Source: Diadema antillarum
Lineage: Eukaryota
Assembly: GCF_040938485.1 (NCBI RefSeq)
Contig: NW_027270981.1
Span: 992,001 to 1,056,000, forward strand
Direction: 5' to 3'
DNA: 64,000 bases
The translations under genes and the position numbers were made by a program. Numbering within the stretch: position 1 is the stretch's first letter; every line of letters begins with the position of its first letter. Below the pieces are notes generated by a model. It saw nothing but the letters and a program-made list of their open reading frames with translations, was not told the origin of the DNA and made no database searches. Of the stretch, positions 4,485 to 58,716 are shown one piece after another.

Positions 4485-4540
<56 letters not shown>

Positions 4541-10844: not shown

Positions 10845-11047
10845 CTGTATAAGCTGTAATTTTTGCGTACAGATATTTTTGCGAATGGGGAGGTCGCGAA
10901 CATTTTCGTGAGTTGTTGTTTTTGTGAATGGACACAGAGGCTATGGAAAGTGTACTGTTAACTAGTGCATGGTGATATTTTTGTATGGTGTCAAATTCGT
11001 GGTCCAACAGTGACTCACAAAATTTGCGAACATAACAACTTATACAG
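10845..11047. mobile_element. Tc1/mariner-type MITE
   Basis: TA|CTGTATAAG...CTTATACAG|TA with TA TSD. Confidence 0.7.
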
Positions 11048-11144
11048 TACACACAAATTGCCCTGCATCGATGGAAATAAGCACTGAATTGACCAGTGTT
11101 TTTAGTAGTAACCACAACAAAAGAAGTCCTGGGCATGCATACTC

Positions 11145-11210
11145 GGGCAGGATTCGAAACTATGACCTTCTGATCTCAATACAGGCATCTTATCCACTAG
11201 ACTACCGAGC
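11145..11210 (-). mobile_element. tRNA-derived repeat head (SINE-like)
   Basis: Minus strand GCTCGGTAGTCTAGTGG (A box)...GTTTCGAATCC (B box); acceptor-like pairing GCTCGG/CCGAGT, but the anticodon arm does not pair. Confidence 0.6.
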
Positions 11211-11438
11211 TTCCCCCGATAGCCAGTGCTAGTTCTAATCCTTGTATTTTGAAGCAGGTACTGCGTAATTATTCAAATTCATGAAATTCTTCCATCGAGT
11301 TCTTTTCATTGCAACTGATTCTGATTAAGAAATTGCCCTCGACTTACATACTCGGGCATTATTTCTTTTGTCATAGGTTTTCATGTCATATCAACACCAG
11401 AGTTGCTATGCAAATGTCAGTTAAAGGAAGTATATTCC

Positions 11439-33535: not shown

Positions 33536-33791
33536 TGCCTGTTGTGTCAGGTTTAGCGCCTTCAAGTCCAGCAATGGGGGCAGAAAGATTTAATGAATAG
33601 CGCTCGAGGATCATGCAGTCAATACTATGTCATTACGAAGAGTTTATCAATAAAACAAAGTCTCCCAGTAGGACTTCAACTACAAGAGGATAATTCTCCT
33701 CAAAGCGTTGTCACAGAGATTTGTACATAATCCAAATTGTGTATTATGAGATACTGTGAGATGCTATGCGAATGTCAAGGGGGTGTATTCT

Positions 33792-36629
33792 CTATACTGG
33801 AATGGCATTATTTATTACCTTGTTTGATCTAAAGTTTTTCTCAAGCTTTGCCCAGAACAAGTCCTGTCCGTATTCATCCTCTTCCCATTCTAAGTATGGT
33901 CTGTTAGCACTCAGGAAGAGCCGCACAAGATAAGGAAGTTGGTTTTCTTCCACATCCTCCTTGAAAATCAGGACAACTTTGTCCAATTTGGTTTCGTTAA
34001 TGTGTTCTAAGGCCATACGCAGCTTAGTCATAAACCATATCTCCTCTACTGACTGGTTGCTGATCACAAGAACAGTCTTGTAGCTATTTTCCAGGGCATG
34101 ATGGATAGCGTCTACTAAGTACATTCCAATGTGGAAATAGTCATCACCCCAGAGAATGCTTTCAAACTGGGGAAATCTTTCTTCCATTGCTGGTTTCATG
34201 ACATCGTCGACCCAGTCTTCATCCCCATCAGAGAACATTACATTAATCTGGTACCTATAGTCCTCTATTTGTTGATTGTCCTCCACTTCCTCGTATCCCA
34301 AGATGGCTAGCTTCAGGAGATAGAGCCGGTAACGAAACCACCAGCGCTTATAGTATACAACTATAGCCACATATCCCACCATAATAAGGACCAGGGAAAC
34401 TGATACTACGAGTGTCACATTTATGCTGCAGAATTCTTCAGGATCAAATGGTAGAAAAGGATGATTGACTAAAGTTGGAAAGGATGATCTTGAGCAAACA
34501 GTCTTGTTCGGTTGCATAAGAACAACATTGCTCAGCTCAACCCAGTTTCTGAACCACGCTAAATTGCATTTGCATGAGAGTGGGTTGTGGGATAAGTCTA
34601 GAAAGCGCATTGTATCAGGAAATATAGTATTGGGATATATGGTCGTGAGGTGATTCTCAAGCAGAAATAATTTGAAAAGATGAGGTGTGTCATTGAACAG
34701 TGTAAGTGGCAAAGACCTAACCATATTTCTTTCGAAAAAAAGATTTCTGAGACTCTGGAGACCATACAGGGCATGCGCAGATGGCTCTTGAATTTGGTTA
34801 CCCCTGAGATACAATGTTGTCAAGGAAGTCAAATTCTTAAATAGTCCCTCTTTCAGTACTTTGATCTCAGAGTCAGAGATATCCAATGATTTCAGGCTTT
34901 CCAGTGAACTAAAGGTTCCAGTTTCCATGTTGTCCAAGGAATTTCCCTGCAGGTAAAGCCCCTCGAGTACTGCTTGACCAGCAAACAAGGAATGGTTTGT
35001 TTTGGAATCAAACAAATTTTTGCTTTGTAAATTGTTGAAACGTAGATAAAGTTTTTGCAGTGATGCAGTTCCTGAAAACTGGTGTGTGGAATTCATTGAA
35101 AGTTTTGTATTTGACAGATCCAGTATTTGTAGATCAGTCATCTCTCGGAAAACTTCAACAAGGTAAGAGTAGCCTTCTGAATTCAGATACAACTTTTGAA
35201 GATGTGGTGTTTGTGCAAATGCAACTGGAGAATATCCACTAATCTGATTGTAAGAGGCATGTAGAACTTTGAGATTAGTGAGTCCCCATAGCATGCTGTC
35301 AGGAAGTTTATCTAAATTATTGAAAGAGATGTTCAGAGTGAGCAGAGTTTTAACGATCCAGCGTCTGTATTTGCAGGATCGAACCAGGTTGTTGGAGAGA
35401 TCAAGATGTTGCATCATAGACAGCTGTATGAAGGAGCCAGGATCCAATGTGACAATTTCATTGTGGGAAATGTTCAACTGGAGGAGGTTTTCATTGCAGT
35501 GAAATGAACCCAATGGCAGAGAGGAAATGTGATTTCCAGATATGTCCAGAATCTCTAATGAATGAAGTCCACAAAAAGATGTGTTTGCAATATTTGTTAT
35601 CCTGTTCTGTCGTATTTTTAGACTTAAAGTGTGATTTAAACCTGCAAATGCGTAGTGAGGGATGTCAAATATTCCATTGTTACTCAACTCTATGTTCAAT
35701 ATGTGGGGAATGTCAACTCTTTCACACGTAGATTTGTTCAGTGGAATTATTTCCTTGAGCGAAGTGCCAATAAGTGACAGTTTCGTAATCTTCAAGTTGC
35801 CCATGAATGCCAGCACTTCAAATTTGTCGATATTATTCGCATCAAGGTAAATAAAATTAACAATTGTAAGGTCCGAGAATACTCCAGATGTTACTTCAGT
35901 GATTTTGTTATTGCTCAGGTCTAAAGCATGCATGGAGTTGTTTTGTAGGGGGAAAAAAGCATGTTTTGGAATGGATGTGATATCATTCCTTGACAAGTTT
36001 ATTTCAGATATTCTCTTCCACTGTGAGACTGACTGAAAGTCAAACTTTTTTATTGAATTTTTCATCAAAATTAGTTTCTGTAAGTTTGATAAATTTTTTA
36101 TTGCAGCTAGAGGCACAGAAGGAATCAAATTATATCCTAAATCTACAACAGTGAGATTCTTACTAGAATTTAGTAGTCCTGGCTGAATTTGTGTCAACTC
36201 ATTTCCCGAAAGACATAATACTTTGAGATGAATTAGCGGTGTAAGAGCAGCATTTTCTATATGAACAATGACATTGCTCTTCAAATTTAAGTTGATTAGA
36301 TTCCAGAGATGTCCAAAGGAGTTGTTTTGAAGTTGTGATATAAGGTTGTGTGATAAATCTAAAGCAATGGTCCTGTTTGGTAGGTCTTGTGGAACTGACT
36401 TCAGATGGCAGTGGTTGCAGTAGGCCTTGTACATGCCTTGGGTTGCATTTTCGATGTGACAGCAGTTGTGTTGGGGAGGCACCATCTGGTCTGTTGGGAA
36501 GTCAGCTGACACTGGCAGCAAGCACACCACCCACAGCACCAGAAGAATGCAGCATGTAGCATACAATAAGGAATGCATCCTGAAGGCAGCCATGGTGCCC
36601 TCGAAATGGTCACGTGTTATACCGTACAT
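33792..36629 (-). CDS. Toll-like receptor TLR-C, 945 aa (933 aa if the conserved ATG at 36593 is used)
   Basis: LRR-TM-TIR, intact ORF; the extra upstream ATG lies 7 nt inside the predicted exon. Confidence 0.97.
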   Translation of the reverse strand: MYGITRDHFEGTMAAFRMHSLLYATCCILLVLWVVCLLPVSADFPTDQMVPPQHNCCHIENATQGMYKAYCNHCHLKSVPQDLPNRTIALDLSHNLISQLQNNSFGHLWNLINLNLKSNVIVHIENAALTPLIHLKVLCLSGNELTQIQPGLLNSSKNLTVVDLGYNLIPSVPLAAIKNLSNLQKLILMKNSIKKFDFQSVSQWKRISEINLSRNDITSIPKHAFFPLQNNSMHALDLSNNKITEVTSGVFSDLTIVNFIYLDANNIDKFEVLAFMGNLKITKLSLIGTSLKEIIPLNKSTCERVDIPHILNIELSNNGIFDIPHYAFAGLNHTLSLKIRQNRITNIANTSFCGLHSLEILDISGNHISSLPLGSFHCNENLLQLNISHNEIVTLDPGSFIQLSMMQHLDLSNNLVRSCKYRRWIVKTLLTLNISFNNLDKLPDSMLWGLTNLKVLHASYNQISGYSPVAFAQTPHLQKLYLNSEGYSYLVEVFREMTDLQILDLSNTKLSMNSTHQFSGTASLQKLYLRFNNLQSKNLFDSKTNHSLFAGQAVLEGLYLQGNSLDNMETGTFSSLESLKSLDISDSEIKVLKEGLFKNLTSLTTLYLRGNQIQEPSAHALYGLQSLRNLFFERNMVRSLPLTLFNDTPHLFKLFLLENHLTTIYPNTIFPDTMRFLDLSHNPLSCKCNLAWFRNWVELSNVVLMQPNKTVCSRSSFPTLVNHPFLPFDPEEFCSINVTLVVSVSLVLIMVGYVAIVVYYKRWWFRYRLYLLKLAILGYEEVEDNQQIEDYRYQINVMFSDGDEDWVDDVMKPAMEERFPQFESILWGDDYFHIGMYLVDAIHHALENSYKTVLVISNQSVEEIWFMTKLRMALEHINETKLDKVVLIFKEDVEENQLPYLVRLFLSANRPYLEWEEDEYGQDLFWAKLEKNFRSNKVINNAIPV

Positions 36630-37254
36630 CCACTTCCTGTGAAAATTTTACAAGAAGTATCAAGCTCAGTCATGGAAAGCAAGCTCATGACAGCTAGAAT
36701 GCAGTTTAGGAATATCATCAGATTTCTAGGAGTGTGCATGTTAATGTCCAGGAAACTGTAGATAACCCCATGCAGCAACTTCCACTTCAATTAGACTGCG
36801 TATTTTAACTGTCAATCTTGTAATGTACTGTATATAGTACCAGTACCAAATTAGGCAGCAACATGTTTTGTGATTACCTGTTTGAAGTTCCTGGAACAGG
36901 TCCATCTCAGTCAGGAAAGATTACTTTAAAGAAGTTGATATGTTTACAATGTCAGAGATAGTTTAAATAAAGATGCTTGTCTAGTGCTTATCATGACAGG
37001 TTCATTGCTTAGCTGCTAGTTTTACTCAATCGTTCCAATGACCACATACAGGTGTTAAAATGTGCTCACCTCGAAATCCGGAAAAATGGATAATCATCAG
37101 AAAGTCAGCTTCATGTGGACAGTAGAGTATATCAGAGTGCCAAGATAGTTCACTCCTATGACACTGTGATAGATGAGGTGGCGTTATCATTAGTTCATGT
37201 GTCAGTCTTGCAGTCAAGATTGGGGCTTGAAGTTAAGGCCCTGTTGGTCTAGGT

Positions 37255-37480
37255 GGGATGAACAGAGTTGCCTGACACTATGATTTCCTCCACAGCAAGA
37301 GGCAAAAACACTGTCCTTTGAACCAGATGAATGCAGGTCCAGTGTTTGAGAAAGTCTTGACTCATGCACAGTAATATAAAGATCCCACCTCACTTCTCTT
37401 TGCAAAGAGCAGGGTGTACACACTCAAAGTAGTCCAACCCACACACAGATGATTGCTGCTGTGAGGCCCATCGTAGTTCA
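37255..37480 (+). mobile_element. Old SINE-core remnant upstream of TLR-C
   Basis: GCAAGAGGCAAAAACACTGTCC...AGGTCCAGTGTTTGAGAAAG...ACTCATGCAC...AAAGATCCC...GCAAAGAGCAGGGTGT; TGACTCA at 37358. Confidence 0.7.
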
Positions 37481-38288
37481 CCCCCATCCCGGGTGAACAG
37501 CAATACCACAGAAATTTATGCATGTATAGGAGATCCATGCATGCTTGTCTTTAGGTCTTCAGGGTTTGACAGTTATCAGATGAAGAATGATTTATAAGCT
37601 CTGCCGTAAATGAATGGTTCTAGAGGCTTTTAGAAGATTTAGTGACCTAGCTAACACAGGATATTCACAGTGGCCTTTGTTTTTGCAATAAAGGGCCATG
37701 ATTGATGGTCAACTGACACTGGATGCACTGCCTCACGTGTGGCATTGAAACCATTTTATGAAATGATTGAAGGCGTAATTCAGGGTGTGAAATTACCTTA
37801 AAATGGAATGTGAAATCTGGCCGTGCATTTCATCATATGCCATAATTAGTATAAAGCAGTCAACGAAAAGTGATGTCCAATTAATCATTCAATCAAACTG
37901 TATTTAAATGTCAGTGCAGTCTCATTTGTCATAAATCATTCATACAAGTTTCAATTTTGATTAAAGGCAGGGCTTTAGCTTTTCTGAAATGTATCCAGTG
38001 GTGTGGATTTACTTTTTAATTGATTTATTGATGGATATTTCATTTTATTAGTACCATCAAGAGGAAAGGCTGTGCAGTTTGCTGTACATAATTTCAAGAA
38101 GGGATGTGCAGATTCCTTGACATAACCAAGTGGGGTTTCTCAAACTTTAAACCCAAACTTGACATTAATAAGCATTGCAGTGGTGGATTTTGTATCTTGA
38201 AATTTCTCATGGGTGAACGGTAAATAAGGAGTGATCTGGTGACTCTAGAGAGTACAGCAGCTTCATTGCGTGACAAGATTGCATAGTA

Positions 38289-39132
38289 CAGTACTCTCCG
38301 GATAATCGGGTATGCTCGGGCAGAGCGTTTCTTACCCGATTACGCGGAGTACGCGATTAACAGAAGAACACGTCTCATTCACAATTGACACACACAATGT
38401 GTATGTACATGCATTGTACACCGCACCAAACACCTACACTGTATAATTATCACGGCTTGCACGGCACATTATACGTACCTTACACTTGCTCAGTCACGAG
38501 CAATGATTTAAACTCTTTTAATGGACAAATTATGTCTTCAGAAAATTTGTCGTTTGACTATAGACTCCTCGCTAACACGAAGGTGTTTTCCAAAATTAAC
38601 ATGTCTCTTTGCGTGCACTAGTCACATAGAACGTTGGGTTACTTTTCGAGAAGTGACTGGGGGAAAGCAAATTTCCGGAGCTGGTGCATGGCCTGATTTT
38701 CGTTGTAAACTTCTCATATTGTGAACGTTGTTGTGGAGCAAGGGAGGAGCGCAAGTGTGTTCAACTCTTGTCTGTCTATGCAATTGTGAGTGCCAGCTAC
38801 ATACAGTGTCCTGTTTGTTTACATGTGGCAAGTCAGTACTGGTACATGTGTTTTCATGTTTAATCACTCCCCAATTTAATGATCGGTCTTCTTTGTAAAT
38901 TAAGCAGAAAGTGCGATTAACCGTGACAAATTTGACATTCATTTCTTAAAGTGTTATATCTGCGATAAGATGTATGTAGAAATTAGATTATAAGAAAATT
39001 ATTTACCCATATATGCGGAGAGGCAACCCGATTATCAGGTAGATTTAATGTGCATTGAAACTGATTTTGACATTACTACCCAATTAAATGGAGTACCCGT
39101 TGAAACCATACCCGATTACGCGGAGAGTACTG
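38289..39132. mobile_element. Tc1/mariner-type non-autonomous element
   Basis: TA|CAGTACTCTCC..TAATCGGGTAT...ATACCCGATTA..GGAGAGTACTG; absent from the TLR-A paralog (15860-15880). Confidence 0.8.
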
Positions 39133-39359
39133 TGTCAGTGAATGTAATCAAATTGGTCCCATGGAAAATACATTTTTGTTATAAAGATCACATAAAGTGA
39201 ATATTTTCTTTCATGTATTGATGGGGGGTTAAACCAATTTGCGTAATCTCTGTCACTCAAGGGTTCCTGTAGAAAATTACAGATATTGTACATAGAAGCA
39301 GGTGAGACACACACACGTTGTATGTGCACTTCTCCCTCCTTCTCTGCCACATATGTTCG

Positions 39360-39450
39360 AGAGGGCATTTTCTACAATTGGGTTCCTCTTCATGCAAAAA
39401 CAAAAGTAGTGCCATCGCCATTGAGGGAAAGTAGCCTTTTGTTCAGATGT
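39360..39450. other. Truncated ETS block (copy 4; lacks the ETS/CTCACAC part)
   Basis: GAGGGC...GTTCCTCTTCATGCAAAAACAAAAGTAGT...GAGGGAAAGTAGCC matches 19060-19145, then diverges. Confidence 0.6.
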
Positions 39451-39910
39451 TAACAAAACTGTGGTATACATGCATGGTTAATGACAGGGTCTTTACAAAC
39501 CGAAAAAAAGTATATGTACATGTAACTCTTGCGATTTCTTGCATAATTTCTAACAATACGATTCAAAGAAAATATCACACATTAGAGTAGATAAGAATTT
39601 AAGTCTGACATATTATAGAAATAACTGGAAATGCCAGACATTAAAGGGTAGCTGTCATGATTGAAAAATGGGTGAACTTCAAACATGATTATCTCGAAAC
39701 ATCATCCTTACGGAAATACTGCATATACGACGGTTCGGATGACTGCAGACGATATGTTGCCCAACAAAACATTCCAATTCAGGAATATTCTTTTGAGATG
39801 CATCTTTGTGTATTTCATACACTTATAACAGTGATGACCAAGCTTTTGATTAATAACAACAGTAGGTCAATGCAGGCTTTACTTGGCATTGACTTTGCCC
39901 ATCAGACATG

Positions 39911-40072
39911 CATGGGTAGGGGCCAAGTTTTAGTGCCACTAGTCAAAGTACAGGTTATGTTAATGACTTGATAAAATTTCTGTCTGATTAACATGGGTAG
40001 GGGCCAAGTTTTAGTGCCACTAGTCAAAGTACAGGTGTATGTTAATGACTTGATAAAATTTCTGTCTGATTA
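39911..40072. repeat. 81-bp tandem duplication in the TLR-D 3' flank (also 46687-46848 in TLR-E)
   Basis: CATGGGTAGGGGCC at 39911 and 39992; 46687 and 46768. Confidence 0.9.
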
Positions 40073-40194
40073 ACAAAGATTATGTCCCTTCAGTTCTGTG
40101 TGTAGTTTATTTTCTAGATATTACACTCACTGTGCATAATCTTATTTGAGTATCAGAAATGTTAGAGCTGCCGTGATTAGTGGAGATGTATTTT

Positions 40195-43029
40195 CTATAC
40201 AGGAATGACATTATTTATTACCTTGTTTGACCTGAAATTCTTCTCAAGCTTGGCCCAGAACAAATTCTGTCCATATTCATCTTCTTCCCATTTCAAGTAC
40301 GGTCTGTTAGCACTCAGGAAGAGCCGCACAAGATACGGAAGATGGTTTTCTTCTACATTCTCCTTGAAGATCAGGACAACTTTGTCCAATTTGGTGTCAT
40401 TAATATGTTCTAATGCCATGCGCAGCTTGGTCATAAACCATGTCTCCTCCACTGACTGGTTGCTGATCACAAGAACAGTCTTGAAGCTGTTTTCCAGGGC
40501 ATGATGGATAGCGTCTACTAAGTAGAGGCCAATTTCGAGATAGTCGTCACCCCAGAGAATGCTTTCAAACTGAGGAAATTTTTCTTCCATTGCTGGTCTC
40601 ATGACATTGTTGACCCAGTCTTCATCCCCATCAGAGAACATGACATTTAGCTGATCCCTATAGTCCTCTATATGCTGCTTGCCTTCCAAATCTTTGTATC
40701 CAAAGATGGCCAGCTTCAAGAGATAGAGGTGGTAGCGAACCCACCAGCGCCTATAGTATACAACTATGGCCACATATCCCACCATGATAAGGGCCAAGGA
40801 AACTGATACTATAAGAGTCACATTTATGCTACACAATTCATCAGGATTAAAGAGCAGAAAGGGATGATCGACCACAGTTTCAAAGGATGATCTTGAGCAA
40901 ACAGTTTTATTCGATTGCATAAGGACCACATTACTGAGCTCAACCCACTTTCTGAACCACGCTAAATCGCATGTGCATGAGAGTGGGTTTTGTGATAAAT
41001 CTAAGTGTATAGTGGTAGGAAATAATGTACCAGGAAATATGGTGCTGAGGTGATTCTCAGATAGAAATAGTTTAAAAAGATGAGGTGTGTCATTGAACAG
41101 TGTGATTGGCAAAGACCTAACTGAACTCTTTTCAAAGAAAAGATTTCTGAGACTGTGGAGACCATACAGGGCATGTGCAGATGGCTCTTGAATTTGGTTA
41201 CCCCTTAGATACAATGTTGTCAAGGAAGTCAAATTTTGAAACAGTCCTGGTTTCAGTACTTTGATCTCTGAGTGAGAGATATCCAATGATTTCAGGCTTT
41301 CCAGTGAACTGAAGATTCCAGTTTCCATGTTGTTCAAGGAATTTCCCTGCAGGTAAAGCCCCTTGAGTACTGCTTGACCAGCAAACAAGGACTGGTTTGT
41401 TTTGGTGTCAAACAAATTTTTGCTTTGTAAATTGTTGAAACGTAGATAAAGCTCTTGCAGTGATGCAGTACCTGAAAACTGGTGTGTGGAATTCATTGAA
41501 AGTTTTGTATTTGACAGATCCAGTATTTGTAGATCAGTCATCTCTTGGAAAACTTCAGCAAGGTAGGAGTAGCCTTCTGAATTCAGGTACAACTCTTGAA
41601 GATGTGGTGTTTTTGTAAATGCAACTGGAGAATATCCACTAATCTGATTGTAAGAGGCATGTAGAACTGTGAGATTAGTGAGTCCCCATAACATGCTGTC
41701 AGGAAGTTTATCTAAATTATTGAAAGAGATGTCCAGAGTGAGCAGAGTTTTAATGGTCCAGCGTCTGTATTTGCAGGATCGAACCAGGTTATTGGAGAGA
41801 TCAAGATGCTGCATCATAGACAGCTGTATGAAGGAGCCAGGATGCAATATGATAATTTTGTTGTGGGAAATGTTCAACTGGAGGAGGTTTTCATTGCAGT
41901 GAAATGCACCCAATGGCAGAGAGGAAATGTGATTTCCAGATATGTCCAGAATCTCTAATGAATGAAGTCCACAAAAAGATGTGTTTGCAATATTTGTTAT
42001 CCTGTTCTGTCGTATTTTTAGACTTAAAGTGTGATTTAAACCTGCAAATGCGTAGTGAGGGATGTCAAATATTCCATTGTTACTCAACTCTATGTGCAAT
42101 ATGTGGGGAATGTCAACTTGTTCACACGTAGATTTGTTCAGTGGAATTATTTCCTTGAGCGAAGTGCCAATAAGTGACAGTTTCGTAATCTTCAAGTTGC
42201 CCATGAATGCCAGCACTTCAAATTTGTCGATATTATTCGCATCAAGGTAAATAAAATTAACAATTGTAAGGTCCGAGAATACTCCAGATGTTACTTCAGT
42301 GATTTTGTTATTGCTCAGGTCTAAAGCATGCATGGAGTTGTTTTGTAGGGGGAAAAAAGCATGTTTTGGAATGGATGTGATATCATTCCTTGACAAGTTT
42401 ATTTCAGATATTCTCTTCCACTGTGAGACTGACTGAAAGTCAAACTTTTTTATTGAATTTTTCATCAAAATTAGTTTCTGTAAGTTTGATAATTTTTTTA
42501 TTGCAGCTAGAGGCACAGAAGGAATCAAATTATATCCTAAATCTACAACAGTGAGATTCTTACTAGAATTTAGTAGTCCTGGCTGAATTTGTGCCAACTC
42601 ATTTCCCGAAAGACATAATACTTTGAGATGAATTAGCGGTGTAAGAGCAGCATTTTCTATATGAACAATGACATTGCTCTTCAAATTTAAGTTGATTAGA
42701 TTCCAGAGATGTCCAAAGGAGTTGTTTTGAAGTTGTGATATAAGGTTGTGTGATAAATCTAAAGCAATGGTCCTGTTTGGTAGGTCTTGTGGAACTGACT
42801 TCAGATGGCAGTGGTTGCAGTAGGCCTTGTACATGCCTTGGGTTGCATTTTCGATGTGACAGCAGTTGTGTTGGGGAGGCACCATCTGGTCTGTTGGGAA
42901 GTCAGCTGACACTGGCAGCAAGCACACCACCCACAGCACCAGAAGAATGCAGCATGTAGCATACAATAAGGAATGCATCCTGAAGGCAGCCATGGTGCCC
43001 TCGAAATGGTCACGTGTTATACCGTACAT
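40195..43029 (-). CDS. Toll-like receptor TLR-D, 944 aa, chimera (N-terminal part TLR-C-like, C-terminal part TLR-E-like)
   Basis: Intact ORF; 41900-43029 nearly identical to TLR-C; 40195-41402 nearly identical to TLR-E. Confidence 0.95.
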   Translation of the reverse strand: MYGITRDHFEGTMAAFRMHSLLYATCCILLVLWVVCLLPVSADFPTDQMVPPQHNCCHIENATQGMYKAYCNHCHLKSVPQDLPNRTIALDLSHNLISQLQNNSFGHLWNLINLNLKSNVIVHIENAALTPLIHLKVLCLSGNELAQIQPGLLNSSKNLTVVDLGYNLIPSVPLAAIKKLSNLQKLILMKNSIKKFDFQSVSQWKRISEINLSRNDITSIPKHAFFPLQNNSMHALDLSNNKITEVTSGVFSDLTIVNFIYLDANNIDKFEVLAFMGNLKITKLSLIGTSLKEIIPLNKSTCEQVDIPHILHIELSNNGIFDIPHYAFAGLNHTLSLKIRQNRITNIANTSFCGLHSLEILDISGNHISSLPLGAFHCNENLLQLNISHNKIIILHPGSFIQLSMMQHLDLSNNLVRSCKYRRWTIKTLLTLDISFNNLDKLPDSMLWGLTNLTVLHASYNQISGYSPVAFTKTPHLQELYLNSEGYSYLAEVFQEMTDLQILDLSNTKLSMNSTHQFSGTASLQELYLRFNNLQSKNLFDTKTNQSLFAGQAVLKGLYLQGNSLNNMETGIFSSLESLKSLDISHSEIKVLKPGLFQNLTSLTTLYLRGNQIQEPSAHALYGLHSLRNLFFEKSSVRSLPITLFNDTPHLFKLFLSENHLSTIFPGTLFPTTIHLDLSQNPLSCTCDLAWFRKWVELSNVVLMQSNKTVCSRSSFETVVDHPFLLFNPDELCSINVTLIVSVSLALIMVGYVAIVVYYRRWWVRYHLYLLKLAIFGYKDLEGKQHIEDYRDQLNVMFSDGDEDWVNNVMRPAMEEKFPQFESILWGDDYLEIGLYLVDAIHHALENSFKTVLVISNQSVEETWFMTKLRMALEHINDTKLDKVVLIFKENVEENHLPYLVRLFLSANRPYLKWEEDEYGQNLFWAKLEKNFRSNKVINNVIPV

Positions 43030-43654
43030 CCACTTCCTGTGAAAATTTTACAAGAAGTATCAAGCTCAGTCATGGAAAGCAAGCTCATGACAGCTAGAAT
43101 GCAGTTTAGGAATATCATCAGATTTCTAGGAGTGTGCATGTTAATGTCCAGGAAACTGTAGATAACCCCATGCAGCAACTTCCACTTCAATTAGACTGCG
43201 TATTTTAACTGTCAATCTTGTAATGTACTGTATATAGTACCAGTACCAAATTAGGCAGCAACATGTTTTGTGATTACCTGTTTGAAGTTCCTGGAACAGG
43301 TCCATCTCAGTCAGGAAAGATTACTTTAAAGAAGTTGATATGTTTACAATGTCAGAGATAGTTTAAATAAAGATGCTTGTCTAGTGCTTATAATGACAGG
43401 TTCATTGCTTAGCTGCTAGTTTTACTCAATCGTTCCAATGACCACATACAGGTGTTAAAATGTGCTCACCTCGAAATCCGGAAAAATGGATAATCATCAG
43501 AAAGTTAGCTTCATGTGGACAGTAGAGTATATCAGAGTGCCAAGATAGTTCACTCCTATGACACAGTGATAGATGAGGTGGCGTTATCATTAGTTCATGT
43601 GTCAGTCTTGCAGTCAAGATTGGGGCTTGAAGTTAAGGCCCTGTTGGTCTAGGT

Positions 43655-43880
43655 GGGATGAACAGAGTTGCCTGACACTATGATTTCCTCCACAGCAAGA
43701 GGCAAAAACACTGTCCTTTGAACCAGATGAATGCAGGTCCAGTGTTTGAGAAAGTCTTGACTCATGCACAGTAATATAAAGATCCCACCTCACTTCTCTT
43801 TGCAAAGAGCAGGGTGTACACACTCAAAGTAGTCCAACCCACACACAGATGATTGCTGCTGTGAGGCCCATCGTAGTTCA
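43655..43880 (+). mobile_element. Old SINE-core remnant upstream of TLR-D
   Basis: Matches the TLR-C copy at offset 6400; TGACTCA at 43758. Confidence 0.7.
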
Positions 43881-44041
43881 CCCCCATCCCGGGTGAACAG
43901 CAATACCACAGAAATTTATGCATGTATAGGAGATCCATGCATGCTTGTCTTTAGGTCTTCAGGGTTTGACAGTTATCAGATGAAGAATGATTTATAAGCT
44001 CTGCCGTAAATGAATGGTACTAGAGGCTTTTAGAAGATTTA

Positions 44042-44394
44042 CCCCGCGTTCACATTGTCCCCCGTGCTGCGGGGACAGCCTCAAGAGATCTTATCTTTTT
44101 TACGACTGACCGTTCACATTGGTATCTCATCTGTCCCCGAGCTGTGGGGGCAATTGGGGCTTGGGGCGAGCTCTGCCAGGCATGGCGCATGCGCACATTT
44201 GATGACCACAGCTGGACGCTATCAATTTCGCCCCAAGGTCACTCTCCCCTCCAAATCCTGTCCCCGTACCCGACTTGATTCGCGGGGATGAGGGGACAAG
44301 TCCCAGCGAGCGTTCACATTATGGTTTTGGAGGAGAAAGTCCCACAGCTCGGGACTTTCCCCGCGGCGCGGGGGACAATGTGAACGCAGTGACA
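44042..44394. mobile_element. 353-bp MITE insertion (possibly PIF/Harbinger-like)
   Basis: Perfect 19-bp TIR GCGTTCACATTGTCCCCCG (44046) / CGGGGGACAATGTGAACGC (44369-44387); absent from the duplicate site at 37641. Confidence 0.85.
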
Positions 44395-45041
44395 GTGACC
44401 TAGCTAACACAGGATATTCACAGTGGCCTTTGTTTTTGCAATAAAGGGCCATGATTGATGGTCAACTGACACTGGATGCACTGCCTCACGTGTGGCATTG
44501 AAACCATTTTATGAAATGATTGAAGGCGTAATTCAGGGTGTGAAATTACCTTAAAATGGAATGTGAAATCTGGCCGTGCATTTCATCATATGCCATAATT
44601 AGTATAAAGCAGTCAACGAAAAGTGATGTCCAATTAATCATTCATACAAACTGTATTTAAATGTCAGTGCAGTCTCATTTGTCATAAATCATTCATACAA
44701 GTTTCAATTTTGATTAAAGGCAGGGCTTTAGCTTTTCTGAAATGTATCCAGTGGTGTGGATTTACTTTTTAATTGATTTATTGATGGATATTTCATTTTA
44801 TTAGTACCATCAAGAGGAAAGGCTGTGCAGTTTGCTGTACATAATTTCAAGAAGGGATGTGCAGATTCCTTGACATAACCAAGTGGGGTTTCTCAAACTT
44901 TAAACCCAAACTTGACATTAATAAGCATTGCAGTGGTGGATTTTGTATCTTGAAATTTCTCATGGGTGAACGGTAAATAAGGAGTGATCTGGTGACTCTA
45001 GAGAGTACAGCAGCTTCATTGCGTGACAAGATTGCATAGTA

Positions 45042-45880
45042 CAGTACTCTCCGGATAATCGGGTATGCTCGGGCAGAGCGTTTCTTACCCGATTACGCGG
45101 AGTACGCGATTAACAGAAGAACACGTCTCATTCACAATTGACACACACAATGTGTATGTACATGCATTGTACACCGCACCAAACACCTACACTGTATAAT
45201 TATCACGGCTTGCACGGCACATTATACGTACCTTACACTTGCTCAGTCACGAGCAATGATTTAAACTCTTTTAATGGACAAATTATGTCTTCAGAAAATT
45301 TGTCGTTTGACTATAGACTCCTCGCTAACACGAAGGTGTTTTCCAAAATTAACATGTCTCTTTGCGTGCACTAGTCACATAGAACGTTGGGTTACTTTTC
45401 GAGAAGTGACTGGGGGAAAGCAAATTTCCGGAGCTGGTGCATGGCCTGATTTTCGTTGTAAACTTCTCATATTGTGAACGTTGTTGTGGAGCAAGGGAGG
45501 AGCGCAAGTGTGTTCAACTCTTGTCTGTCTATGCAATTGTGAGTGCCAGCTACATACAGTGTCCTGTTTGTTTACATGTGGCAAGTCAGTACTGGTACAT
45601 GTGTTTTCATGTTTAATCACTCCCCAATTTAATGATCGGTCTTCTTAAGCAGAGAGTGTGATTAACCATGACAAATTTGACATTCATGATTTCTTAAAGT
45701 GTTATATCTGCGATAAGATGTGTGTAGAAATTAGATTAGAAGAAAATTATTTACCCATATATGCGGAGAGGCAACCCGATTATCAGGTAGATTTAATGTG
45801 CATTGAAACTGATTTTGACATTACTACCCAATTAAACGGAGTACCCGTTGAAGCCATACCTGATTACGCAGAGAGTACTG
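45042..45880. mobile_element. Tc1/mariner-type element, duplicate of 38289-39132
   Basis: TA TSD intact on both sides (45040-41, 45881-82). Confidence 0.8.
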
Positions 45881-46112
45881 TATCAGTGAATGTAATCAAA
45901 TTGGTCCCTTGGAAAATACATTTTTGTTATAAAGATCACTTAAAGTGAATATTTTCTTTCATGTACCGGTATTGATGGGGGGTTAAACCAATTTGCGTAA
46001 TCTCTGTCACTCAAGGGTTCCTGTAGAAAATTACAGATAATGCTATTGTACATAGAAGCAGGTAAGACACACACACGTTGTATGTGCACTCCTCCCTCCT
46101 TTTCTACCACAT

Positions 46113-46210
46113 ATGTTAGAGAGGGCATTTTCTACAATTCGGTTCCTCTTCATGCAAAAACAAAAGTAGTGCCATCGCCATTGAGGGAAAGTAGCCTTTT
46201 GTTCAGATGT
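46113..46210. other. Truncated ETS block (copy 5)
   Basis: Duplicate of 39360-39450. Confidence 0.6.
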
Positions 46211-46970
46211 TAACAAAACTGTGGTATACATGCATGGTTAATGACAGGGTCTGTACAAACTGAAAAAAAAAGCATATGTACATGTAACTTTTGCGATTTC
46301 TTGCATAATTTCTAACAATACGATTCAAAGAAAATATCACACATTAGAGTAGATAAGAATTTAAGTTTGACATATTATAGAAATAACTGGAAATGCCAGA
46401 CATTAAAGGGTAGCTGTCATGATTGAAAAATGGGTTAACTTCAAACATGATTATCTCGAAACATCATCCTTACGGAAATACTGCATATACGACGGTTCGG
46501 ATGACTGCAGACGATATGTTGCCCAACAAAACATTCCAATTCAGGAATATTCTTTTGAGATGCATCTTTGTGTATTTCATACACTTATAACAGTGATCAT
46601 AACTTTGTGATGACCAAGCTTTTGATTAATAACAACAGTAGGTCAATGCAGGCTTTACTTGGCATTGACTTTGCCCATCAGACATGCATGGGTAGGGGCC
46701 AAGTTTTAGTGCCACTAGTCAAAGTACAGGTTATGTTAATGACTTGATAAAATTTCTGTCTGATTAACATGGGTAGGGGCCAAGTTTTAGTGCCACTAGT
46801 CGAAGTACAGGTGTATGTTAATGACTTGATAAAATTTCTGTCTGATTAACAAAGATTATGTCCCTTCAGTTCTGTGTGTAGTTTATTTTCTAGGTATTAC
46901 ACTCACTGTGCATAATCTTATTTGAGTATCAGAAATGTTAGAGCTGCCGTGATTAGTGGAGATGTATTTT

Positions 46971-49769
46971 CTATACAGGAATGGCATTATTTATTACCTT
47001 GTTTGACCTGAAATTCTTCTCAAGCTTGGCCCAGAACAAATTCTGTCCATATTCATCTTCTTCCCATTTCAAGTACGGTCTGTTAGCACTCAGGAAGAGC
47101 CGCACAAGATACGGAAGATGGTTTTCTTCTACATTCTCCTTGAAGATCAGGACAACTTTGTCCAATTTGGTGTCATTAATATGTTCTAATGCCATGCGCA
47201 GCTTGGTCATAAACCATGTCTCCTCCACTGACTGGTTGCTGATCACAAGAACAGTCTTGAAGCTGTTTTCCAGGGCATGATGGATAGCGTCTACTAAGTA
47301 GAGGCCAATTTCGAGATAGTCGTCACCCCAGAGAATGCTTTCAAACTGAGGAAATTTTTCTTCCATTGCTGGTCTCATGACATTGTTGACCCAGTCTTCA
47401 TCCCCATCAGAGAACATGACATTTAGCTGATCCCTATAGTCCTCTATATGCTGCTTGCCTTCCAAATCTTTGTATCCAAAGATGGCCAGCTTCAAGAGAT
47501 AGAGGTGGTAGCGAACCCACCAGCGCCTATAGTATACAACTATGGCCACATATCCCACCATGATAAGGGCCAAGGAAACTGATACTATAAGAGTCACATT
47601 TATGCTACACAATTCATCAGGATTAAAGAGCAGAAAGGGATGATCGACCACAGTTTCAAAGGATGATCTTGAGCAAACAGTTTTATTCGATTGCATAAGG
47701 ACCACATTGCTGAGCTCAACCCACTTTCTGAACCACGCTAAATCGCATGTGCATGAGAGTGGGTTTTGTGATAAATCTAAGTGTATAGTGGTAGGAAATA
47801 ATGTACCAGGAAATATGGTGCTGAGGTGATTCTCAGATAGAAATAGTTTAAAAAGATGAGGTGTGTCATTGAACAGTGTGATTGGCAAAGACCTAACTGA
47901 ACTCTTTTCAAAGAAAAGATTTCTGAGACTGTGGAGACCATACAGGGCATGTGCAGATGGCTCTTGAATTGAGTTACCCCTTAGATACAATGTTGTCAAG
48001 GAAGTCAAATTTTGAAACAGTCCTGGTTTCAGTACTTTGATCTCTGAGTGAGAGATATCCAATGATTTCAGGCTTTCCAGTGAACTAAAGGTTCCAGTTT
48101 CCATGTTGTTCAAGGAATTTCCCTGCAGGTGAAGCCCCTTGAGTACTGCTTGACCAGCAAACAAGGACTGGTTTGTTTCATTATCAAACAAACTTTTCCT
48201 TCCTAAATTGTTATATTGCAGATAAAGCTCTCCCAGTGAGACAGCTCTGGAAAACTGATTTGTGGAATTCATTGTGAGTTTTGTGTGAGACAGATTCAGA
48301 ATTTTTAGATTAGACATATCACGGAAAACTTCAGCAAGGTATGAGGCTGCTTCTGAGGTTAGGTACAACTCTTGGAGATGTTGTGTTTGTGCAAATAAAA
48401 AAGGAGAATAGCCTCTTATCTTATTGTGAGACGCATGAAGTATTTTGAGATTTTGGAGTCCCCATAGCATGTGGTTGGGAAATTTATTGAAATTGTTGAA
48501 AGAAATGTTCAGAGTGAGCAAACTTTTAATGGTCCACCTTAAGTATTTCCAGGAAGAAAGCATGTTATAAGATAGATCAAGCTGTTGTATCTTCGACAGC
48601 TGTACGAAGGAGCCAGGATGCAATCTGAGAATTTGATTGTGGGAAATGTTCAACTGGAGGAGGTTTTCATTGCAATGAAATGCAGCCAGTGGCAGAGAGG
48701 AAATTTGATTTCCAGATATGTCCAGAATCTCTAATGAATGAAGTCCACAAAAAGATGTGTTTGAAATCATTGTTAATCTGTTCTGTCGTATTTTTAAACT
48801 TAAAGTATGATTGAAACCTGCAAATGCATATTGAGGGATGTCAAATATTCCATTGTTACTCAACTCTATATTCAATATGTGGGGAATGTCAACTCCATCA
48901 CATGTAGATTTGTTCAGTGGAATTATTTCCTTGAGCGAAGTGCCGATTAGTGACAGTTTCTTAATCTTCAAGTTACCCATGAATGCCAGCACTTCAAATT
49001 TGTTAATATTATTTGCATCAAGGTAAATAAAATGAACAATTGTAAGGTCCGAGAATACTCCAGGTGTTACTTCAGTGATTTTGTTATTGCGCAGGTCTAA
49101 AGCATGCATGGAGTTGTTTTGTAGGGGGGAAAAAGCATGTTTAGAAATGGATGTGATATCATTCCTTGACAAGTTTACATCAGATATTCTCCTCCACTTT
49201 GAGACTGACTGAAAGTCAAACGATTTTATTGAATTTTTCATCAAAATTAGTTTCTGTAAGTTTGATAAATCTTTTATTGCAGCTAGAGGCACAGAAGGAA
49301 TTAAATTATATCCTAAATCTACAACAGTGAGATTCTTACTAGAATTTAATAGTCCTGGCTGAATTTGTGTCAACTTATTTCCTGAAAGACACAATACTTT
49401 GAGATGAAGAAGAGGTGTGAAAGCAGCATTTTCTATGTGGACAATGGCATTGCTCTTCAAATTTAAGTTGATTAGATTCCAGAGATGTCCAAAGGAGTTG
49501 CTTTGAAGTTGTGATATGAAGTTGTGTGATAAATCTAAAGCAATGGTCCTGTTTGGTAGGTCTTGTGGAACTGACTTCAGATGGCAGTGGTTGCAGTAGG
49601 CCTTGTACATGCCTTGGGTGGTATTCTCAATGTGACAGCAGTTGTGTCGGGGAGGCATCATCTGGTCTAGTGTTGAGACAGCTGATACTGACAGTAGGCT
49701 CACCACCCACAGCACCAGGAGAATGCAGCTCAGAAAACACATTGAAGAATGCATCCTGGATGCGGTCAT
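46971..49769 (-). CDS. Toll-like receptor TLR-E, 932 aa
   Basis: LRR-TM-TIR, intact ORF; divergent juxtamembrane region and TIR (YRRWWVRYHL, LEIGLY) shared with TLR-D. Confidence 0.97.
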   Translation of the reverse strand: MTASRMHSSMCFLSCILLVLWVVSLLSVSAVSTLDQMMPPRHNCCHIENTTQGMYKAYCNHCHLKSVPQDLPNRTIALDLSHNFISQLQSNSFGHLWNLINLNLKSNAIVHIENAAFTPLLHLKVLCLSGNKLTQIQPGLLNSSKNLTVVDLGYNLIPSVPLAAIKDLSNLQKLILMKNSIKSFDFQSVSKWRRISDVNLSRNDITSISKHAFSPLQNNSMHALDLRNNKITEVTPGVFSDLTIVHFIYLDANNINKFEVLAFMGNLKIKKLSLIGTSLKEIIPLNKSTCDGVDIPHILNIELSNNGIFDIPQYAFAGFNHTLSLKIRQNRLTMISNTSFCGLHSLEILDISGNQISSLPLAAFHCNENLLQLNISHNQILRLHPGSFVQLSKIQQLDLSYNMLSSWKYLRWTIKSLLTLNISFNNFNKFPNHMLWGLQNLKILHASHNKIRGYSPFLFAQTQHLQELYLTSEAASYLAEVFRDMSNLKILNLSHTKLTMNSTNQFSRAVSLGELYLQYNNLGRKSLFDNETNQSLFAGQAVLKGLHLQGNSLNNMETGTFSSLESLKSLDISHSEIKVLKPGLFQNLTSLTTLYLRGNSIQEPSAHALYGLHSLRNLFFEKSSVRSLPITLFNDTPHLFKLFLSENHLSTIFPGTLFPTTIHLDLSQNPLSCTCDLAWFRKWVELSNVVLMQSNKTVCSRSSFETVVDHPFLLFNPDELCSINVTLIVSVSLALIMVGYVAIVVYYRRWWVRYHLYLLKLAIFGYKDLEGKQHIEDYRDQLNVMFSDGDEDWVNNVMRPAMEEKFPQFESILWGDDYLEIGLYLVDAIHHALENSFKTVLVISNQSVEETWFMTKLRMALEHINDTKLDKVVLIFKENVEENHLPYLVRLFLSANRPYLKWEEDEYGQNLFWAKLEKNFRSNKVINNAIPV

Positions 49770-50379
49770 GGTACCTTCAAAATGGTGTTATATCCACTTC
49801 CTGTGAAAATTTGACAACAGTATTAAGGTCTTTTGGGGAAAGCAAGATTATGGGGGGGGGGGGGGAAGGTTGGTATAGCCCCAACTAGCTGCTTCCACTT
49901 CAAGAATGCATATAATTTCGACTGTCAATAAGTGTAAAGTTAAGTAGTAGCACATTTTGCGATGACCCCTTGAAGCTGTTGTAACATCTCAGTCAGGATA
50001 TCATTTTTTTGATACTTCAGAGGAGTGAAATATACCTCCAGTCACAGAGAAGTTGGTTAAGATGCTCAATTTGCTGGCTGTGAGATACATAAATAAAAAA
50101 TGGTGTCTGGTGTTCTGGAATAGTTTCAAGTTAAGTATTACCCCTCGCCAATTTAACAATGTACCACACAATAGGGTTACAATGTCCGTCTGTTTCAGTC
50201 TGGAAAGGTATGCATAGAAAGTCAGCTTGAATGGGTCAGATTGCATCAAAATGTCCAATAAGTCACTCCTATGACTACATGTGCAGTTGTATGACGAAAT
50301 TGGCGTGACTCTGTGGTTAGTTCACATGTCAATCTTGTAAGCAAGACTGTGTGGCTTGGGGTCAGGCTCTCTGAGTCCA

Positions 50380-55920: not shown

Positions 55921-58716
55921 CTATACAGGAATTGCATTATTTATCACCTTGTTTGATCTGAAGTTCTTCTCAAGCTTGGCCCAAAACAAATCCTGTCTGT
56001 ATTCATCTTCTTCCCATTCCAAGTACGGTCTGTTAGCGCTCAGGAAGAGCCGTACAAGATAGGGAAGTTGGTCATCTTCAACATCCTCCTTGAAGATCAG
56101 AATCACTTTGTCCAATTTGGTTTCATTGATATGTTCTAAGGCCAAGCGAATCTTGGTCATAAACCATTGCTCCTCCACCGACTCATTGCTTATCACAAGA
56201 GCTGTCTTGAAGCTGTTTTCTAGGGCATGATGGATAGCGTCTACTAAGTACATACCAATGTGAAGATAGTCGTCACCCCAGAGAATGCTATCAAACTGAG
56301 GAAATCTTTCTTCCACGGCTGGTCTCATGACATTGTTGACCCAGTCTTCATCCCCATCAGAGAACATGATATTAAGCTGGTGCCTATAGTCCTCTGGTTG
56401 TTGATTGTCTTCCACTTCCTCATATCCCAAGATGGCTAGCTTCAGGAGATAGAGCCGGTAGCGAAACCACCAGCGCTTATAGTATACGACTATAGCCATA
56501 TAACCCACAATGACAAGGACCAGGGAAACTGATACTATAAGAGTCACATTTAAGCTACAGAATTCTTGAGGATCAAAGAGTAGAAAAGGATGATTGACTA
56601 AAGTTTCAAAAGAGGATCTTGAGCAAACAGTCTTATTTGATTGCATAAGGACAACATTGCTTAGCTCAACCCACTTTCTGAACCATGCTAAATCGCATGT
56701 GCATGAGAGTGGGTTTTGTGATAAATCTAAGTGTATAGTGGTAGGAAATAATGTACCAGGAAATATGGTGCTGAGGTGATTCTCAGATAGAAATAGTTTA
56801 AAAAGATGAGGTGTGTCATTGAACAGTGTGATTGGCAAAGACCTAACTGAACTCTTTTCAAAGAAAAGAGTTCTGAGACTGTGGAGACCATACAGGGTAT
56901 TTGCAGATGGCTCTTTAATTGGGTTACCCCTTAGATACAATGTTGTCAAGGAAGTCAAATTGTTAAATAGTCCTGGTTTCAGTACTTTGATCTCAGAGTC
57001 AGAGATATCCAAGGATTTCAGGCTTGTCAGTGAACTGAAGGTTCCAGGTTCCATGTTGTTCAAGGAATTTCCCTGCAGGTACAGCCCCTGGAGTACTGCT
57101 TGACCAGCAAACAAGGAATGGTTTGTTTGGGTATCAAACAAACTTTCACTTCCTAAATTGTTGAAACGCAAATGAAGTTTTTGCAGTGACTCGGCTCCAG
57201 TAAACTGATGTGTGGAATTCAATGCAAGTTTTGTATATGACAGATCCAGTATTTGTAAGTAAGTCATGTCACGGAAATTTTCACACAGGTAAGACGCTTC
57301 TTCTGAGATCAGATACAACTCTTGCAAATTTGGTGTGTGTGCAAATAAAAAAGGAGAATATCCTCTAATCTTGTTGTGAGACACAGTTAGAACTTTGAGA
57401 TTTGTGAGTCCCCTTAACATGCTGTGAGGAATTTTATCTAAACTATTGAAAGAGATGTCTAAAGTGAGCAGAGTTTTAGTGGTCCAAAGTCTGTAATTGC
57501 AGGAGAAAATCATGTTATTAGATAGATCAAGGTGTTGTATCATAGACAGCTGTATGAAGGAGCCAGGATGCAATATGAGAATTTTATTATGGGAAATGTT
57601 CAACTGGAGGAGGTTTTCATTGCAGTGAAATGCACCCAGTGGCAGAGAAGAAATATGATTTTCAGATATGTCCAGGATTTGCAATGAATGAAGTCCACAA
57701 AAAGATGTGTTTGCAATATTTGTGATCCTGTTCTTCTGTATCAAAAGACTTACAGTGTGATAAAAACCACAAAATGCATAGTGAGGGATTTCAACTATTT
57801 CATTGCCAGTCAACTCAATTTTCATTATGTGAGGTATGGGAACTGTATCACATGTAGACTTGTTCAGTGGAATTATCTCCTTTAGCAAAGTGCCAATTAG
57901 GGTCAGTTTCTTAATCTTTAAGCTGCCCATGAATGCTAGCACTTCAAATTTGTTAATATGATTAACATCAAGTAAAAGTGAATTAACGGTTGTGAGGTCC
58001 GAGAATACCCCAGGTGTCACTTCATTTATTTTGTTATACTTGAGGTCTAAAATGCGCAGGGAGTTATTTTGTAATGGCAGAAAAGCATGATGAGGAATGG
58101 ATATAATATTATTCAATGACAAGTTTATTTCAGATATTTTCTTCCACCGTGAAACTGACTGAAAATCAAAGGATTGTATTGAATTTTTCATTAGAATCAA
58201 TGTCTCTAAGTTTGATAAGTTTTTTATTGCAGTTACAGGTACAAAAGTAAACAAGTTATTTCCTAAATCTAAGAGACCGAGATTCTTATTAGAACATAGT
58301 AACCCAGGCTGAATTTGTGTCAACTTATTTCCTGAAAGAGATAATATTTTGAGATGAATGAGAGGTGTGAAAGCAGCATTTTCAATATGAAAGATTGCAT
58401 TTTTCTTCAAATTTAAGGTGACTAGATTCCAGATGGGTGCAAAGGAGTAATTTTGTAATTGCGTTATAAGGTTGTATGATAAATCTAAAGTGATCGTCCT
58501 GTTTGGGAGGTCTTGGGGAACTGACTTCAGATGGCAATGATTGCAGTAGACCTTGATGACTCGGCTGGTCTCTTCATAGGAGCAGCAGTTGCGTTGGAGA
58601 GACATCATCTGGTTTGGTGGGGAGGCAGCTGACATCGACAGTAGGAACACCACCCACAGCATCAGTAGAATGCAGCACAGAGCACATATTGAGGAGTGCA
58701 TCCTTATGGCAGTCAT
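55921..58716 (-). CDS. Toll-like receptor TLR-F, 931 aa
   Basis: LRR-TM-TIR, intact ORF; acceptor tttttgcag 31 nt before the ATG. Confidence 0.97.
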   Translation of the reverse strand: MTAIRMHSSICALCCILLMLWVVFLLSMSAASPPNQMMSLQRNCCSYEETSRVIKVYCNHCHLKSVPQDLPNRTITLDLSYNLITQLQNYSFAPIWNLVTLNLKKNAIFHIENAAFTPLIHLKILSLSGNKLTQIQPGLLCSNKNLGLLDLGNNLFTFVPVTAIKNLSNLETLILMKNSIQSFDFQSVSRWKKISEINLSLNNIISIPHHAFLPLQNNSLRILDLKYNKINEVTPGVFSDLTTVNSLLLDVNHINKFEVLAFMGSLKIKKLTLIGTLLKEIIPLNKSTCDTVPIPHIMKIELTGNEIVEIPHYAFCGFYHTVSLLIQKNRITNIANTSFCGLHSLQILDISENHISSLPLGAFHCNENLLQLNISHNKILILHPGSFIQLSMIQHLDLSNNMIFSCNYRLWTTKTLLTLDISFNSLDKIPHSMLRGLTNLKVLTVSHNKIRGYSPFLFAHTPNLQELYLISEEASYLCENFRDMTYLQILDLSYTKLALNSTHQFTGAESLQKLHLRFNNLGSESLFDTQTNHSLFAGQAVLQGLYLQGNSLNNMEPGTFSSLTSLKSLDISDSEIKVLKPGLFNNLTSLTTLYLRGNPIKEPSANTLYGLHSLRTLFFEKSSVRSLPITLFNDTPHLFKLFLSENHLSTIFPGTLFPTTIHLDLSQNPLSCTCDLAWFRKWVELSNVVLMQSNKTVCSRSSFETLVNHPFLLFDPQEFCSLNVTLIVSVSLVLVIVGYMAIVVYYKRWWFRYRLYLLKLAILGYEEVEDNQQPEDYRHQLNIMFSDGDEDWVNNVMRPAVEERFPQFDSILWGDDYLHIGMYLVDAIHHALENSFKTALVISNESVEEQWFMTKIRLALEHINETKLDKVILIFKEDVEDDQLPYLVRLFLSANRPYLEWEEDEYRQDLFWAKLEKNFRSNKVINNAIPV

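Follow-up and report, generated by a model that had tools for sequence, protein, structure and literature searches.

The classical product of unequal crossing-over between tandem genes is haemoglobin anti-Lepore, in which the delta- and beta-globin genes are joined. Hybrids of the same origin occur in the leucine-rich repeat (LRR) resistance-gene clusters of plants, among the primate KIR genes and among the red/green opsin genes. Here we consider a comparable gene from a sea urchin. TLR-D is one of six Toll-like receptor (TLR) genes in a 64,000-nucleotide stretch of the Diadema antillarum genome (the window; all positions below count from its first letter unless another source is named), which matches contig JBFRCO010000093.1 of assembly GCA_040938485.1 at 100% and contains zero N. 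TLR-D lies between TLR-C and TLR-E (hereafter C, D, and E) and is probably, to judge from the sequences compared here, the product of a recent unequal exchange.

Like anti-Lepore, the locus has the order parent, hybrid, parent, and the hybrid combines the 5' part and promoter of one gene with the 3' part of the other. The length of the duplicated unit again equals the parental spacing, and the arrangement is polymorphic beside a two-gene chromosome. Unlike anti-Lepore, the genes here are intronless LRR immune receptors and a tract beside the junction matches neither neighbour. A chromosome with the reciprocal, Lepore-type single fused gene was not seen in the compared haplotypes. The plant LRR, KIR and opsin arrays share with the D locus the recombination of recognition and signalling halves within repeat homology, a copy number that varies by haplotype and a sequence made mosaic by frequent conversion. 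However, D comes from another phylum and encodes a TLR with a TIR domain.

Closer to home is the SpTransformer (Sp185/333) cluster of Strongylocentrotus purpuratus, where short tandem repeats around the genes are reportedly the proposed driver of instability. It too is an urchin immune cluster with segmental duplications, deletions and differences in gene number between haplotypes, but the gene family is another one, and at the D locus the exchange would have taken place inside coding homology. Sea urchin TLR genes are intronless, lie in same-orientation tandem arrays and belong to families with fast turnover (Buckley and Rast, 2012; PMC3367398). That paper makes no statement on the mechanism of exchange; the words gene conversion, unequal, recombination and chimera are absent from it. 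Compared with the S. purpuratus arrays described there, the D locus presents one exchange product beside the ancestral haplotype, in a diadematoid. The mechanism has long been known and is textbook material. D is a neat example of how a hybrid TLR is born, ordinary in its mechanism and visible here as a difference between haplotypes.

C (33792-36629), D (40195-43029), and E (46971-49769) lie on the minus strand, as do the gene parts and upstream regions discussed below, and encode proteins of 945, 944, and 932 amino acids. A first-pass annotation of the window had read D as a chimera, C-like in its upstream part at an offset of about 6400 and E-like over 40195-41402 and in its 3' flank at an offset of 6776. 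It placed the switch between 41392 and 41403 and described the layout as C, spacer, chimera, spacer, E. This description holds up. In a self-BLAST of the window, 33784-37641 aligns with 40187-44041 at an offset of about 6400, and 37641-43089 aligns with 44394-49852 at an offset of 6753 that becomes 6776 within the gene. In a three-way alignment the identity of D to E is 98-100% between the downstream spacer and about 41300, and that to C is 95-100% between about 41330 and 44041. Between 40152 and 41392 practically every informative site of D is E-type and unlike C (the C-type exceptions are 41195/6 and 41355), and between 41403 and 44037 D is C-type and different from E. With C and E as parents, the maximum chi-square break of D falls between 41392 and 41403 (chi-square 269.5; 0 of 2000 permutations). 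In maximum-likelihood trees D stands beside C for 43029-42121, in a C clade supported at 100/100, and within the E clade for 41392-40195, also at 100/100. The chimeric pattern of D is real and far beyond chance.

Block I (42121-43029; residues 1-303) is C-type, encodes the signal peptide and N-terminal LRRs, and mismatches C at 2 of 909 positions (99.8% identity, 0 synonymous differences). Block IV (40195-41402; residues 543-944) is E-type, with 7 mismatches to E in 1208 nt, in agreement with the first-pass count. C would thus represent the 5' parental lineage of D, contributing about 19 N-terminal LRRs and the promoter region, and E the 3' parental lineage. The earlier claim had the N-terminal LRRs of C joined to the LRR-CT, transmembrane (TM) helix and TIR of E, but the E-derived part also includes the last five to six LRRs.

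The similarity runs beyond the coding homology, into 1 kb of DNA upstream and across the entire spacer of 2.5 kb. At 6400 bp (35003-41402) and 6776 bp (41403-48178), the two copies of the unit have the length of the C-E spacing, and 353 bp of the difference is a later insertion. Over five blocks, the copies differ at 19 of 4907 positions (0.39%). The region upstream of C (36630-37640) is duplicated upstream of D (43030-44040) with 4 mismatches in 1011. Spacer 1, between C and D (37641-40194), and spacer 2, between D and E (44394-46970), are copies 1 and 2 of the E-downstream spacer, 0.3-0.4% apart outside a block in the middle. Spacer 1 has the ancestral length and is collinear with the corresponding spacer of Diadema setosum (3565 versus 3577 bp), apart from a private 14-bp deletion near 39830. 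Spacer 2 has as its private feature the 353-bp insertion, a MITE-like (miniature inverted-repeat transposable element) sequence at 44041-44393 with 33-bp terminal inverted repeats, which is absent from spacer 1, from the spacer of the other haplotype and from that of D. setosum. Its words occur at depths of thousands in the read sets, and therefore it belongs to a high-copy family. Logan contigs of four sequencing runs were compared with 38600-44500 (5901 letters; the longest contig here is 1073 bp, and depth gives no copy number), and contigs in runs X1 and X3 skip the insertion.

What did the locus look like before D? The D. antillarum assembly was made with default hifiasm from HiFi reads of the sperm of one male, and totals 1.75 Gb, although the haploid genome is estimated at about 0.70 Gb, and 84% of BUSCOs are duplicated (PMC13511894). 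Given this size and duplication, both haplotypes have been retained. The exact D protein is encoded at one locus in the public collection (JBFRCO010000093.1), whereas the exact E protein has a second encoding contig in the same assembly, the 512-kb JBFRCO010001322.1, which is therefore the other haplotype. It carries three genes, Falt (in the F position), Ealt, and Calt, within the same 1117-amino-acid host gene model as the window. The Ealt coding sequence is identical to E and Calt is a C-type gene of 945 amino acids; between them on this contig there is one spacer, with no D and no TLR remnant. The D. setosum assembly (GCA_964275005.2) likewise has two genes, set927 in the E position and set945 in the C position, 6361 bp apart with a collinear spacer of 3577 bp and no further TLR within 10 kb. 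Since the other haplotype and D. setosum both carry only two genes at this place, the two-gene layout is ancestral and D is a derived copy, heterozygous in the sequenced male. The duplication would be younger than both the split of his two haplotypes and the split from D. setosum.

The favoured explanation is a recent non-allelic homologous exchange, that is, unequal crossing-over, between TLR genes in the C and E positions. Such an exchange would have duplicated a 6.4-kb unit made up of the 5' part of C, the C upstream DNA, the spacer and the 3' part of E, converting C-spacer-E into C-spacer-D-spacer-E. D does lie between the proposed parents in the same orientation, each of its flanks is the flank of the matching parent, the unit equals the parental spacing (compare the 6361 bp of D. 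setosum) and an unduplicated chromosome exists.

A less tidy aspect is the 717 nt immediately 5' of the junction (41403-42120). Here D is 3.6-4.8% from C, against a baseline of 0.39%, and in the next 909 nt of coding sequence and 1 kb of upstream DNA it is again only 0.2-0.4% away. In other words, there are 28 differences from C in 717 nt beside the junction and 6 in the following 1920 nt. The tract consists of block III (41403-41570), which is C-like with 8 of 168 mismatches to C and only 79% identity to E, and block II (41571-42120), which is of the C lineage with 20 of 550 mismatches. Both exceed the baseline, as does the middle block of the spacer (Fisher p <= 1.6e-6). Of 200 synonymous sites in block I, 0 differ between D and C, whereas synonymous divergence (dS) reaches 0.046 in block II and 0.116 in block III; the values for these two blocks equal or exceed those between C and set945 (0.025-0.11). 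Across 41403-42120 there are 8 D-private and 6 C-private sites. In block II the tree is a polytomy of D, C, and set945, with D as far from C as set945 is. Block III instead groups with set927. At 41406, 41407, 41470, and 41546 D is unlike all three C-lineage genes and identical to set927 at all four; the two have 0 differences at variable sites in 41403-41565 and are joined with support of 88/88. E has a long branch in block III (0.27), and its sequence there is identical on both haplotypes. The divergent tract of E, from 48179 to about 48680, is 76-80% identical to every other gene, and none of the Diadema TLR proteins found was closer to it than 77% as a possible donor.

A similar block interrupts the spacers, where 45663-46446 and 38918-39684 differ at 22 of 767 positions (2.9%). 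The spacer 2 block has 23 substitutions and 3 indels in common with the other haplotype and the spacer 1 block has retained the states of D. setosum. The divergent blocks therefore represent allelic lineages that segregate. Positive selection was considered as the cause of the block II divergence and rejected, as dS rises too (0.046 versus 0; dN/dS 0.75). Because synonymous divergence rises in blocks II and III, the explanation is different ancestry and not fast adaptive change. D, C, and Calt are mutually distinct in block II, as are spacer 1, spacer 2, and the other-haplotype spacer. This points to an older and different allelic ancestry for 41403-41570, for 41571-42120 and for the spacer block, in which case the parents were not simply the C and E that now flank D. 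Perhaps the exchange took place between two different haplotypes, or perhaps allelic conversion came later.

Where, then, was the crossover? The first-pass annotation had a single mappable event at 41393-41402 with present-day C and E as direct parents. The position survives as the best single break, but given the divergence of 41403-42120 it is one of three candidate intervals, and the parentage is not supported, since blocks II and III are too far from C and block III groups with set927. A crossover at 41393-41402 that involved a C allele differing from the neighbouring C in 41403-42120 has a little under an even chance. A position further 5', with an E-position allele like the D. setosum gene, is an appreciable possibility for two intervals taken jointly: 41547-41570, which presumes an E-position allele that is set927-like in block III, and about 42096-42121, which presumes one that matched D throughout blocks II-IV. 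If set927 is taken as the 3' parent, the best break becomes 41558/41571. Every X1 contig has the D-type letter at 41470. C-gene alleles with a D-type block III therefore probably exist, and this weakly favours 41393-41402, as does the pairing of D-type block III with spacer-2-type markers in X1 and of C-type block III with spacer-1-type markers in X2. The contiguity of blocks III and IV that D has in common with set927 favours the other two intervals. All this carries a warning: where alleles are mosaic, a junction placed by comparison with neighbouring paralogues alone can be wrong.

Several observations weigh against the exchange as proposed. To begin with, a single switch with both sides at baseline identity is not what D displays, and to account for 717 nt that match neither neighbour takes an unsampled parental allele or extra conversion. 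What if a single crossover between the present C and E, precisely at 41393-41402, was the whole story? This has the best single break for those parents on its side, a site at the edge of a conserved island suited to pairing, and the uniformly D-type 41470 of X1, which means that C alleles with a D-type block III may exist. Yet it is quite unlikely, because it leaves the 28 against 6 differences from C (synonymous ones included), the four sites identical to set927 and the 6 private changes of C itself in 41403-42120. Alternatively, D could be old, present at or before the D. setosum split, with most of its length homogenised recently by conversion with C and E and with the two-gene states produced by deletion. 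Blocks II and III are indeed as far from C as the D. setosum orthologue, set927 resembles an E 5' part plus a D-type 3' part just as an E-D deletion would yield, and conversion is frequent in the cluster (Falt and the F/E identical tract, described below). However, two independent deletions would be required, one in the other haplotype and one in D. setosum, together with multi-kb conversion reaching across intergenic DNA on either side (about 4.9 kb at 0.3-0.4%). Moreover, the divergent spacer block alleles still segregate and are not unit-specific. An old D is thus unlikely. A scenario with no duplication at all, in which a third gene already stood between C and E and was overwritten by conversion from both sides, can also appeal to the conversion tracts that are common in this family. 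It is extremely unlikely, since the similarity extends on each side over 1 kb of DNA upstream and the entire 2.5-kb spacer, and no gene or remnant stands there in the other haplotype or in D. setosum.

The remaining points on the debit side concern the assembly. It is uncollapsed, Nanopore reads of two further animals were used to patch it, Racon polished it with short reads, and the mean HiFi read length was 6.8 kb (PMC13511894). Patching and polishing could distort near-identical copies, and 6.8 kb is about one unit. The D gene itself is seen in the assembly alone. A single molecule spanning C-D-E or the D junction was not seen among the short Logan contigs, which come from other animals. 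The D-private letters at 42493 and 42594 are absent from the contigs of X1, X2, and X3, although contigs cannot prove absence, and the 14-bp spacer indel near 39830 has a single state per run in these three. Could the unit have been falsely duplicated or misplaced by haplotype mis-joining, Nanopore patching or polishing? This is very unlikely. D has private substitutions, the spacers have a private MITE and 14-bp indel pattern and the open reading frame (ORF) is intact over 2.8 kb. The identity of C and E near the junction, 78-92%, is too low for hifiasm to overlap them, and D-type alleles at 41516-41721 occur in an independent run. The specific danger named at first pass, that two haplotypes had been falsely joined through TLR homology, does not fit because the second haplotype is already assembled on a separate contig and D with its spacer forms a third version both of the C-type LRR block and of the E-downstream spacer.

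The reads add allelic detail. X1, X2, and X3 are not from the assembled male, all of their contigs having G at 40591, and they are therefore unable to test the assembly. X2 has a 206-bp contig that is 100% identical to D at 41516-41721, including the D-private 41613 and 41669. It also has the D-type letter at 40208 and the 14-bp-deletion allele of spacer 1. In X6 a 388-bp contig crosses 41334-41721 with 8 differences, and a second contig departs from the stretch at 41402 and then matches E at 30 of 30 letters. None of the listed X1-X3 contigs crosses 41393-41402, and they are too short to bridge identical stretches. Shares of k-mers in public runs reach at most 0.64 (<=0.64), but two thirds of the query is common to C or E, so these are uninformative on D. 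D alleles, then, exist in nature.

The place of the junction is suggestive in another way. A conserved island of about 100 bp (41300-41402), with roughly 90-95% identity in all paralogues, lies immediately 3' of the most variable LRR stretch and ahead of the conserved C-terminal third, and 41393-41402 is its 5' edge. Falt (L002:423-3221) is itself chimeric: in D coordinates it has the sequence of E from its start as far as 41364 and resembles F from 41356 on, with the switch at 41357-41363. The identity to E covers the 5' 1.6 kb, where 309 of 312 informative sites have the E-type letter. This E-to-F switch is inside the island, 40 bp from the D junction. A scan of all triplets also flags E, as Falt 5' plus D 3' with a break within 41356-41403, and therefore triplets alone cannot name the derived gene; flanks and outgroups are needed. 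Exchange boundaries thus cluster where homology first becomes good, as expected for homology-dependent exchange. Because they pile up in the island, the boundary cannot be ascribed to the D-forming event alone. The module combinations around the island are C-C, C-E (D), E-E, and E-F (Falt), and set927 has the same boundary. It is tempting to speculate that the island is a recurrent exchange boundary at which recognition and signalling modules are shuffled among paralogues and haplotypes, but this idea is tentative and rather doubtful. If true, a recurrent boundary together with lineages deeper than the species split would point to balancing selection on a modular TLR repertoire.

Two further mosaics were noticed in this part of the family. 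The D. setosum gene set927 (L004:10001-12784) is E-like at its 5' end (dS to E 0.14), F-like at 41580-41930 (92-94%), C-like at 41403-41570 and E-like at its 3' end. Over about 150 nt of the LRR-CT region (D 40983-41129), F shares 100% identity with E and D, with F at 80-87% on both sides, which is suggestive of a short tract converted between the lineages of F and E.

The predicted TLR-D protein has an LRR ectodomain (Pfam LRR_8, E=7.9e-89, 13 stretches) with 20 LxxLxLxxN motifs spaced about 24 residues apart over residues 111-651, for a total of about 24 LRRs plus an LRR-CT, whose cysteine-rich motif is directly ahead of the TM helix. Kyte-Doolittle hydrophobicity peaks at residues 739-757 (the predicted TM helix) and 20-40 (the hydrophobic N-terminus, a predicted signal sequence). 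The TIR domain (residues 803-917) scores 24.1 bits against a Pfam cut-off of 21.3, a small margin. With its LRR ectodomain, TIR, TM helix and signal sequence, D has the predicted structure of a TLR; any function of the receptor would be a matter of extrapolation from this structure. What makes the locus worth attention is that an echinoderm TLR birth event stands beside the ancestral state in one animal, with the sister species also lacking the hybrid. It offers a testable case in which the innate-immune repertoire of an urchin may gain a receptor with the ligand-binding repeats and promoter of one paralogue and the signalling half of another. It also means that TLR copy number differs between haplotypes in a species struck by mass die-offs.

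Some features of the compared haplotypes deserve a brief mention. The spacer of the other haplotype (L002:15145-18149) has a private 3-kb insertion bounded by 15-bp inverted ends (GGACGTTCCTCAGTT); it lacks a long ORF and is therefore probably a non-autonomous DNA transposon. In a MAFFT alignment the 353-bp insertion of spacer 2 was placed at the start of this element, as if the two haplotypes shared one insertion, but 204 of 347 positions mismatch and BLAST finds nothing; these are two unrelated elements with terminal inverted repeats, 263 bp apart. In spacer 1, word depths at 38600-39190 run from thousands to tens of thousands in three read sets, and this is therefore a dispersed repeat. The window at 46700-49700 and the other haplotype (L002, about 10000-13000) have 0 differences over 3 kb, including the whole E coding sequence; the flanks of this tract are 0.7-12% different, and the reported genome-wide heterozygosity is 2.5%. 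In the DNA upstream of C (36630-37640 and 37642-38918), the window haplotype is 1.2-3.7% from D. setosum and 4.7-7.3% from the other haplotype, which suggests allelic lineages deeper than the species split, or introgression.

The other TLR genes of the window are TLR-A (11439-14198), TLR-B (22318-25116), and TLR-F (55921-58716), all on the minus strand. All six are intact intronless ORFs of 919-945 amino acids arranged head-to-tail, each with multiple Pfam LRR_8 matches and a TIR match; C, D, and E have about 13 LRR_8 stretches apiece and a TIR above the Pfam cut-off. Among S. purpuratus proteins the best match reaches only 41% identity. The annotations of both Diadema species put the whole cluster within a WD40/EF-hand gene model of 1117 amino acids on the opposite strand, so either the cluster is nested in an intron or the model is over-extended. 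Finally, self-BLAST also reveals tandem arrays at 4529-5378 and 20139-21246, built of units of about 166 and about 155 bp, respectively, whose copies are 86-94% identical.

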